A DNA stretch of 64,000 nt from Salpingoeca rosetta. Taxonomy: Eukaryota; Protista; Choanoflagellata. Shown piece by piece: positions 25,701 to 26,457 of this stretch. The stretch covers positions 368,111 through 432,110 of the forward strand of contig JAWQFM010000012.1 of NCBI GenBank assembly GCA_033442325.1. Reading direction: 5' to 3'. The position numbers and the translations under genes are program-made. Position 1 is the first letter of the stretch; each line of letters opens with the position of its first letter. The notes beneath the pieces were generated by a model. It was not told where the DNA came from and did not search any database. It saw only the letters and a program-made list of their open reading frames with translations.

Positions 25701-26457
25701 ATCCTCCACCTCATCCGCAGGAACCAGGAGATGATCGAAAAGGAATACGTCACCGAGCTCCCAGACGCAAAGGTAAAGAGGGTGTATGAAAATGTCGTGT
25801 TGTTTGCGTGCGTGCGTGCGTGCGTGCGTGCGTGTGTGTGTGTGTGTGTGTGTGTGTGTGTGTGTGTGTGTGTGTGTGTGTGTGTGTGTGTGTGTGTTCA
25901 GCGAACCCCTTGTCTGTTCTCAGCGTGCACGGTTTACAGGCCCTCACATTTGATCATGTGTACGCGTGTACTCTCTTGCCGTGGCTGCATAGGGGAGCCT
26001 GCTGTGTGGACGGGATGCACACGAGACCTCTGCTCCACAGGCCTATGGCATTTACACGCTTGACGAGTTTGTCGAGTGGATGCAGTGGGACCGCACCAGC
26101 GAGCCCCCAGCGATTGCACGCCTCTCCCCATCCACAGGTACATGCGTGCACGAGCCACGTGTGTGTCTGTGTTTGTGTCTGTGTATGTGCGCGCGCGCGT
26201 GTGTGTGTATGTGTGTGTGCGCGCGCGTGTGTGTGTGTGTCCCTGCCTGCCTCCCGCTGTTTCCCACACACGTTTGAAGTCAGTGTCAGTCCGTGTGCTT
26301 GTGATCCAACACAGGCCCAAGCAGTTGCGAATCTGCTCCATGTTTGCCACCACCATTCGCTCACCTCCTTTTGTTGCTTCATTCCATGCGTTGGGCTTTG
26401 CGCTTGTTCTCTTCAGTGCCACCACCAGACTCCGTGGAGACCAAGTCCAAGCTTTGA
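22748..26457 (+). CDS. NAD(P)-dependent opine (octopine/nopaline-family) dehydrogenase with C-terminal SKL (~461 aa, 9 exons)
   Basis: Exons 22748-22843, 23181-23301, 23789-24231, 24550-24635, 24924-25062, 25281-25470, 25648-25772, 25993-26137, 26417-26457. Rossmann motif VLCGGSNGNHAL; VRLITRRPEKW; GQGGFDW; NQILHP; RFWLDDIPHGLCVL...AELLGLEVPTI; SAPQAYGI. Ends VETKSKL*. Confidence 0.9.

Follow-up and report, generated by a model that had tools for sequence, protein, structure and literature searches.

A choanoflagellate opine dehydrogenase bearing a constitutive, putative peroxisomal targeting signal

The PTSG_07186 gene and its transcript

The gene PTSG_07186 lies in a 64,000-nucleotide stretch of nuclear DNA of the choanoflagellate Salpingoeca rosetta (contig JAWQFM010000012.1, positions 368,111 to 432,110 of the forward strand); this whole stretch is referred to below as the window, and positions are those of the window unless another contig is named. 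Its product is a member of the opine dehydrogenase (OpDH) family and ends in the tripeptide -SKL, a canonical type 1 peroxisomal targeting signal (PTS1). The gene model was assembled from the raw window sequence and then translated. It was found to comprise 9 exons on the plus strand (22748-26457), with a coding sequence (CDS) of 1386 nt encoding 461 amino acids, and all of its introns have GT..AG ends. The assembled translation is identical, letter for letter, to the NCBI entry 'hypothetical protein PTSG_07186 [Salpingoeca rosetta]' (P0122), so the public gene model already ends in -SKL; its UniRef label is 'Opine dehydrogenase domain-containing protein'. When exon 3 was used as a search query, the PTSG_07186 locus was the sole match. 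The protein is without an N-terminal presequence and its C-terminus reads ...PSTVPPPDSVETKSKL*. The features of the gene are as follows.

22748..22843, plus strand: exon 1, coding part; ATG at 22748, Rossmann beta1/glycine loop GGSNGNH; model identical to P0122/PTSG_07186
23181..23301, plus strand: exon 2; beta2 and basic cofactor loop T37-R38-R39-P40-E41-K42, the loop aligned to OcDH and ArODH
23789..24231, plus strand: exon 3; the largest (147 amino acids), remainder of the NAD(P)-binding domain
24550..24635, plus strand: exon 4; catalytic His223 in NQILHPS; junction reads
24924..25062, plus strand: exon 5; junction 24635->24924 with 77+34 reads
25281..25470, plus strand: exon 6; Arg350 and Asp355 in SRFWLDDIPHG; junction reads
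25648..25772, plus strand: exon 7; junction reads; translated piece matches Pfam Octopine_DH (E=0.01)
25993..26137, plus strand: exon 8; last part of the folded core (...EFVEWMQWDR) plus first residues of the disordered tail; junction 25772->25993 with 70+54 reads
26138..26416, plus strand: intron 8; 279 nt, GT..AG, phase 1, abundant GT/GC simple repeats; removed completely
26417..26457, plus strand: terminal coding exon; 41 nt, VPPPDSVETKSKL and stop; S-K-L codons 26446-26454, TGA 26455-26457
26458..26539, plus strand: 3' untranslated region (UTR); end approximate, the X13 contig running 39 nt past 26500

RNA-seq data were mapped on positions 24400-26500, using the raw reads of two stranded runs (X21 and X22) and the Logan contigs of two other studies (X5 and X13). 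All five junctions within this interval were confirmed, and the junction between exons 3 and 4 (24231->24550) was shown by a loose-end consensus at 24547. The junctions between exons 1 and 2 and between exons 2 and 3 are supported in three ways: the annotated protein is identical, a 1527-nt X13 contig has a fitting length, and the alignment to the orthologs is free of gaps. This X13 contig spans the entire mRNA, and its length fits a 5' UTR of approximately 59 nt (a value derived from the contig itself), the 1386-nt CDS and a 3' UTR of approximately 82 nt.

An earlier note on this DNA, made from the sequence alone, had placed the last intron between the donor ACAG/gtacat (exon end 26137) and the acceptor cttcag/TG (exon start 26417), leaving a last exon of 41 nt, and all of this was found to be correct. 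It had also proposed that the junction be checked against intron retention. The 26137->26417 junction, which was listed in the mapping output as 26134->26414 with 'cut +3' (the same joint, with GT..AG ends), was spanned by 121 spliced reads (88 from X21 and 33 from X22) and was also present in the X5 and X13 contigs, while the depth in the bins covering intron 8 (26175-26387) was 0 in all four runs. At a threshold of 2% no other intron 8 joint was detected in the four runs, including at the in-frame AG at 26313-26314.

These data bear directly on the suggestion in the earlier note that the enzyme is possibly dual-targeted by splicing, with an -SKL form and a cytosolic form arising by intron retention or through an alternative acceptor. 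The layout of the gene would allow it, as the PTS1 is confined to a separate exon of 41 nt and read-through into the intron does end at ...PTHV* (position 26277, open reading frame 26080-26277) with no PTS1, just as had been predicted. There is also a parallel in the fungal glycolytic enzymes GAPDH and PGK, which Freitag et al. are said to have found in 2012 to gain cryptic PTS1 motifs through alternative splicing; the PTS1 is likewise carried on a separate 3' exon, but in S. rosetta that exon is always included. Set against this are the 121 spliced reads, compared with zero intron coverage, in the two stranded runs, and the contigs of the two other studies, which contain the spliced form only. 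The additional acceptor at 26314 is in frame and would yield a protein ending in SKL, as had been noted, but its use was not seen in the RNA-seq data; moreover, because the resulting protein would still end in SKL, this acceptor is unable to remove the signal. Dual targeting via intron retention or the 26314 acceptor was thus rejected on the RNA-seq data; for the conditions sampled dual localisation is contradicted, and we consider it extremely improbable. With no reads covering the intron and no use made of the 26314 acceptor, the -SKL end is constitutive: the -SKL-ending mRNA was the only form detected, and splicing plays no part in regulating the targeting.

Long (CA)n, (GT)n or (CT)n microsatellites occur in 6 of the 8 introns and just beyond the 3' UTR (23568-23680, 24280-24392, 24696-24742, 25826-25898, 26140-26250 and 26505-26582), with a GT repeat of 105 nt at 24288-24392. 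An assembly gap (a run of N) at 26610-26942 starts approximately 70 nt past the inferred 3' end of the mRNA, leaving the polyadenylation region intact. Low-level C>T differences were observed in X22, and not in X21, at 25347 (6/59 reads) and 26073 (4/114 reads); these may be strain variation or errors.

Family membership and catalytic residues

The identification of the product as an opine dehydrogenase, already proposed from the sequence alone, was borne out by the agreement of the family profile, the fold search and an intact His/Asp/Arg set, and membership of PTSG_07186 in the OpDH family is considered solid. A match to Pfam PF02317 (Octopine_DH) is precomputed for P0122 and its relatives, the closest ortholog (P0002) scoring 46.6 bits against a cut-off of 30. 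Pfam searches with single-exon translations returned almost nothing, with only exon 7 matching, the pieces being too short. An exhaustive HMMER search with exon 3 identified 121 relatives only among 1.84 billion cluster representatives. A profile built from 23 diverse members matched Pecten maximus octopine dehydrogenase (OcDH; 3c7a) over its full length (E=1.8e-85) and also aligned end to end with Arthrobacter CENDH (1bg6).

The structure of PTSG_07186 was modelled with AlphaFold2 (pLDDT 88.8, pTM 0.87). In a Foldseek search of the PDB with this model, ranks 1-14 were all opine dehydrogenases, led by 3c7a/3iqd (E=1.2e-24, TM 0.77-0.80 by target), and the top matches included OcDH, CENDH and the yersinopine, staphylopine and pseudopaline dehydrogenases.

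Three residues of PTSG_07186 (H223, R350 and D355) are invariant in the 23 diverse members and correspond in the alignment to His212, Arg324 and Asp329 of OcDH; they are also present in all PTS1-bearing relatives. In OcDH the His-Asp pair is a proton-relay dyad and Arg324 has been termed the 'NADH sensor' (PMC2924402), and the dyad has been noted elsewhere too (PMC10787698). Judged by these conserved residues, PTSG_07186 is catalytically intact.

Pecten OcDH (3c7a, 3c7c, 3c7d and 3iqd), the top Foldseek match, thus shares with the S. rosetta protein a two-domain fold (a Rossmann domain and a helical Octopine_DH domain) as well as the His-Asp dyad and the Arg sensor. It differs in that it is only ~22% identical and is a cytosolic enzyme which ends in ...TGKK, with neither a PTS1 nor a tail. 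The closest non-eukaryotic relatives are bacterial homologs within the same clade (clade A) from Paraliomyxa miuraensis, Nannocystaceae, Myxococcales and Alphaproteobacteria, at 34-37% identity. They have in common with PTSG_07186 a GGS.G glycine loop, a basic T-R/S-R-P loop and the catalytic residues; unlike PTSG_07186, they end directly after the folded core, with no tail.

Conservation of the C-terminal tripeptide

The -SKL of PTSG_07186 fits the canonical PTS1 pattern [SAC][KRH][LM] and is located directly before the TGA on the only transcript form seen. Conservation of the PTS1 in orthologs, which the earlier note had put forward as a test of its reading, was found both in the choanoflagellates and, recurrently, in other protist lineages. 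The named orthologs end in -AKL (Salpingoeca infusionum) or -SKL (Choanoeca flexa and Diaphanoeca grandis), and two further clade members, which are environmental or transcript sequences, end in -SKL (P0005) and -AKL (P0158). Together with PTSG_07186 these proteins form a single clade (98% SH-aLRT), which we take to cover both choanoflagellate orders, and 6 out of 6 end in SKL or AKL. The other five are 40-59% identical to the S. rosetta protein. Beyond the W432-x-R434 position the tail of 25-30 residues cannot be aligned among the six proteins, up to the invariant K460 and L461 and a third-last residue that is either S or A. In the AlphaFold2 model the 26-residue tail (residues 436-461) lies past the last core helix and has a pLDDT of <50; the C-terminus is therefore predicted to be exposed and flexible, and a disordered tail of this sort is what a PTS1 added to the end of a folded enzyme would lead one to expect.

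Across the family, 21 of the 78 full-length members end in [SAC][KRH][LM] compared to 0.35 expected from the frequency of the same tripeptide inside the same 78 proteins (P ~2e-31), and the distribution of the signal on the tree requires at least nine gains or losses. The PTS1 recurs in at least five eukaryotic subclades besides the choanoflagellate clade. In a sister clade of eukaryote-like intronless genes encoding proteins of 595-760 amino acids, 7 of 10 have a canonical PTS1 and one more ends in -SKI; on two contigs with such long-form proteins the neighbouring genes are eukaryote-like (DnaJ, WLM). Within the family's 'classical' half the signal was identified in Chattonella subsalsa (-ARL), Triparma species (-SKM) and several further sequences, and an MMETSP transcript in the 90%-identity cluster of the Triparma proteins ends in -SKL. 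None of the 17 proteins of the bacteria-containing sister clade, the named members of which are all bacterial (Myxococcota and Alphaproteobacteria), carries a PTS1, and all of them end directly after the folded core. A final protein search with the choanoflagellate alignment returned no more orthologs and none from Monosiga brevicollis, although this search was word-limited and is not proof of absence.

Two protein fragments from ENA metagenomes (P0001 and P0165) share 74-80% identity with the S. rosetta protein and run into microsatellite-coded CVCVCV; these read-throughs show that public metagenomes contain a near relative of S. rosetta which has the same gene, likewise rich in introns.

The use of -SKL by S. 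rosetta was also assessed in its own genome, which encodes PEX14, identified by its PEX14_N domain (37.3 bits). The acyl-CoA oxidase gene (G000:C6 ~1,014,795-1,015,466, minus strand) has a short last exon and its product ends in ...RRIFGGQSKL*, from which it follows that S. rosetta uses -SKL on a marker enzyme. The intron before the last exon of this gene is open in frame, and the layout is that of PTSG_07186, with the PTS1 on a small terminal exon.

It could be argued that the -SKL of PTSG_07186 is inert, being masked or ignored, and that the protein serves anaerobic glycolysis in the cytosol, as the ordinary opine dehydrogenases of molluscs do. The characterised animal enzymes are indeed cytosolic, and the localisation of PTSG_07186 is a prediction only. 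However, all six members of the clade, at 40-59% identity, keep the tripeptide while the 25-30 residues preceding it are unalignable; prediction gives a tail that is disordered and exposed; the signal recurs in five or more further eukaryotic subclades and in 0 of 17 proteins of the bacteria-containing sister clade; and the acyl-CoA oxidase of the same organism carries -SKL. On this evidence an inert tripeptide is very unlikely. The -SKL looks functional as a PTS1, and S. rosetta very likely possesses a peroxisome-targeted OpDH. As the -SKL is constitutive and is kept in choanoflagellates and in many algal relatives, an OpDH probably works in the peroxisomes of many marine protists.

Partner enzymes, cofactor and possible role

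Our favoured reading, held with moderate confidence, is that PTSG_07186 is a catalytically intact OpDH which is imported by PEX5 via its constitutive -SKL and acts as a peroxisomal redox valve or shuttle arm. It builds on what was directly shown for gene structure, splicing, family membership, catalytic residues, PTS1 conservation and the disordered tail; to this we add by inference that the protein is in fact imported, which substrates and cofactor it uses and in which direction the reaction runs in the cell. PEX5 would recognise the folded enzyme in the cytosol through -SKL and the enzyme would be imported into the peroxisomal matrix, a step taken from established PTS1 biology and not from observation. 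In the matrix it would use NAD(P)H to condense a 2-oxo acid, pyruvate being the likeliest, reductively and reversibly with an amino acid, giving an opine, and this reaction would serve as a pyridine-nucleotide redox valve or as one arm of a shuttle, comparable to peroxisomal LDH, MDH and Idp3.

A possible source of the 2-oxo acid was identified in a bacterial-type, apparently intronless malic enzyme gene of S. rosetta (G000:C5 2,043,188-2,045,380, plus strand; Malic_M 82.9 bits), the product of which ends in ...SSGVARAKL*, a canonical PTS1. Judging by this ending, the malic enzyme would act in the peroxisomal matrix, releasing pyruvate, CO2 and NAD(P)H there. The organelle of opine formation may therefore itself be a source of pyruvate and probably of NADPH, and the S. 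rosetta OpDH may be fed by this matrix pyruvate.

A true shuttle requires a cytosolic partner, and for this reason three further OpDH-family genes of S. rosetta were considered, which are classical and animal-like and only ~27% identical to PTSG_07186.

G000:C5 ~91,000-92,100 (near 91.6 kb): classical OpDH paralog; end ...LIKGDIVSLKNHL* (...SLKNHL*)
G000:C13 ~1,591,600-1,595,300 (near 1.593 Mb), minus strand: classical OpDH paralog; end ...KTVEELVAF*
G000:C35 ~299,900-303,300 (near 301 kb): classical OpDH paralog; end ...KTVEQLVG*

These paralogs carry VTVCGGGNAAH, the acidic, NADH-type loop FSFEEEA and RTRYLTEDLPHGL. A canonical PTS1 is present in 0 of the 3, the -NHL of the first fitting relaxed PTS1 patterns only. 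They could supply the cytosolic arm of a shuttle, although they are distant from PTSG_07186 and the sharing of substrates is only supposed. The C35 paralog contains an in-frame TAG and runs of N and may be damaged or misassembled.

Several points weigh against the favoured reading. The loop after beta-2 (T37-R38-R39-P40-E41-K42) is basic, while that of the NADH-using Pecten OcDH (T33-L34-F35-A36-D37-E38) is hydrophobic and acidic, and the NADH-dependent ArODH has D34-I35 at this position, in an alignment of low posterior confidence in the cofactor loop. The glycine loop (G13-G14-S15-N16-G17-N18) has a Ser in place of the middle Gly of the OcDH loop GGGNGA, the textbook motif being GxGxxG/A; as the GGSNGN variant is conserved throughout clade A, bacterial members included, it is probably benign and functional. 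The genomic neighbourhoods of three bacterial relatives (a DAO-type oxidase in one, a RoxA-like cytochrome and a DegT aminotransferase in another, FMO and HGLS in the third) share no common theme and so give no clue to the substrate. Finally, the raw RNA-seq reads come from one study only, for which reason other isoforms may be made in other life stages. A role in re-oxidising the NADH of beta-oxidation, as put forward in the earlier note, is unproven, and with its basic loop the enzyme may not have such a role at all.

In the third of these neighbourhoods, in a Nannocystaceae metagenome-assembled genome (GCA_041389905.1, gene 8893-9720), the homolog P0155 adjoins an HGLS-family gene and an FMO-like oxygenase. 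HGLS-family enzymes convert 2-oxoadipate to 2-hydroxyglutarate in lysine catabolism, which may hint at a lysine-related substrate; this arrangement is absent from the two other genomes.

The basic loop raises the possibility that the enzyme is peroxisomal but NADP(H)-linked, with a part in peroxisomal NADPH and amino-acid metabolism and none in the re-oxidation of beta-oxidation NADH. Malic enzyme would then convert malate to pyruvate and CO2 with formation of NADPH, and NADPH would be spent in joining the pyruvate to an amino acid to form an opine; alternatively, opine oxidation would supply NADPH, pyruvate and amino acids. In staphylopine dehydrogenase (SaCntM) the 2'-phosphate of NADPH is held between R33 and K39, with R33 governing the NADPH preference (bioRxiv 10.1101/641969), and across opine dehydrogenases an Arg immediately following beta-2 has been reported to indicate NADPH acceptance. 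PTSG_07186 has R38 and R39 directly after beta-2 and K42 four residues on, reminiscent of the R33/K39 sandwich of SaCntM. A basic loop is found in 18 of 20 PTS1-bearing relatives, the paralogs of S. rosetta that have no PTS1 have an acidic one, and the bacterial-type malic enzyme ends in -AKL. The Arg rule is a tendency, however, and some Arg-bearing enzymes do as well or better with NADH; in addition, the equivalence of the residues comes from sequence alignment only, the NADPH output of the malic enzyme is only probable, and a malate-to-opine route is without known precedent. We regard such an NADP(H)-linked enzyme as a possibility, though not a probable one. For the redox valve or shuttle favoured here, the loop indicates that PTSG_07186 may handle NADPH, alone or beside NADH, and the claim of NADH re-oxidation is weakened because the loop Arg suggests that NADPH is accepted.

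The nearest functional parallels are the mammalian LDHBx and MDH1x, which are likewise soluble pyridine-nucleotide dehydrogenases with a C-terminal PTS1; peroxisomal dehydrogenases of this kind pass reducing equivalents across a membrane impermeable to NAD(P)H (PMC4359377, PMC5133446, PMC7829553). The mammalian enzymes belong to other families and their product is lactate or malate, compared to an opine for the S. rosetta enzyme. In mammals, moreover, the PTS1 is present in a few percent of the molecules via stop-codon readthrough, whereas in S. rosetta it is on every transcript. Yeast Mdh3, Gpd1 and Idp3 are similarly PTS1-type peroxisomal dehydrogenases and are functional analogues.

The earlier note stated that such a system was not known to have been described, which proved too strong, as a glycosomal (peroxisomal) targeting signal has already been reported in silico for the OPDH of Diplonema papillatum, an organism in which opines were detected (PMC8611851). 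Since glycosomes are specialised peroxisomes, the idea of a peroxisomal OpDH is not unprecedented. As in S. rosetta, an OpDH-family enzyme of a marine protist carries a peroxisomal-type signal, and the authors concluded by inference that pyruvate either enters the organelle or arises within it (PMC8611851). The Diplonema enzyme differs in belonging to a mollusc/annelid-type clade thought to be a separate bacterial acquisition (PMC8611851); its organelle is a glycosome in which glycolysis takes place, a relaxed kinetoplastid pattern was used to call its signal, and the report makes no tie to choanoflagellates or ochrophyte algae and describes no family-wide pattern. A search of the literature revealed no link of octopine or opine dehydrogenase to PTS1 or peroxisomes in choanoflagellates or algae, and no citation of PTSG_07186. 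What is new here is the constitutive, RNA-verified PTS1 of a choanoflagellate OpDH and its conservation across the choanoflagellate clade, together with the family-wide recurrence of the PTS1 in protists with ordinary peroxisomes and its association with an NADPH-type cofactor loop.

Peroxisomal NAD(P)H balancing is known in few model organisms, where it involves malate, glycerol-3-phosphate, lactate and isocitrate shuttles, and textbooks place opine dehydrogenases in the cytosol, as enzymes of invertebrate anaerobiosis. The data from S. rosetta, an organism amenable to transfection and editing, generalise the lone in silico remark on the Diplonema glycosome, and the cofactor is probably not simply NADH. 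We tentatively suggest that PTS1-bearing OpDHs could be a widespread and unrecognised class of peroxisomal NAD(P)H-linked enzymes of marine protists, covering both choanoflagellate orders, raphidophyte and bolidophyte algae and the clade of eukaryote-like proteins of 600-760 amino acids, in which an opine redox valve or shuttle might replace, or work beside, the lactate, malate and isocitrate shuttles. A PTS1 conserved in the closest living relatives of animals, and found repeatedly in ochrophyte algae, would point to a different solution to peroxisomal redox balance or to a new pathway of amino-acid and 2-oxo-acid metabolism.

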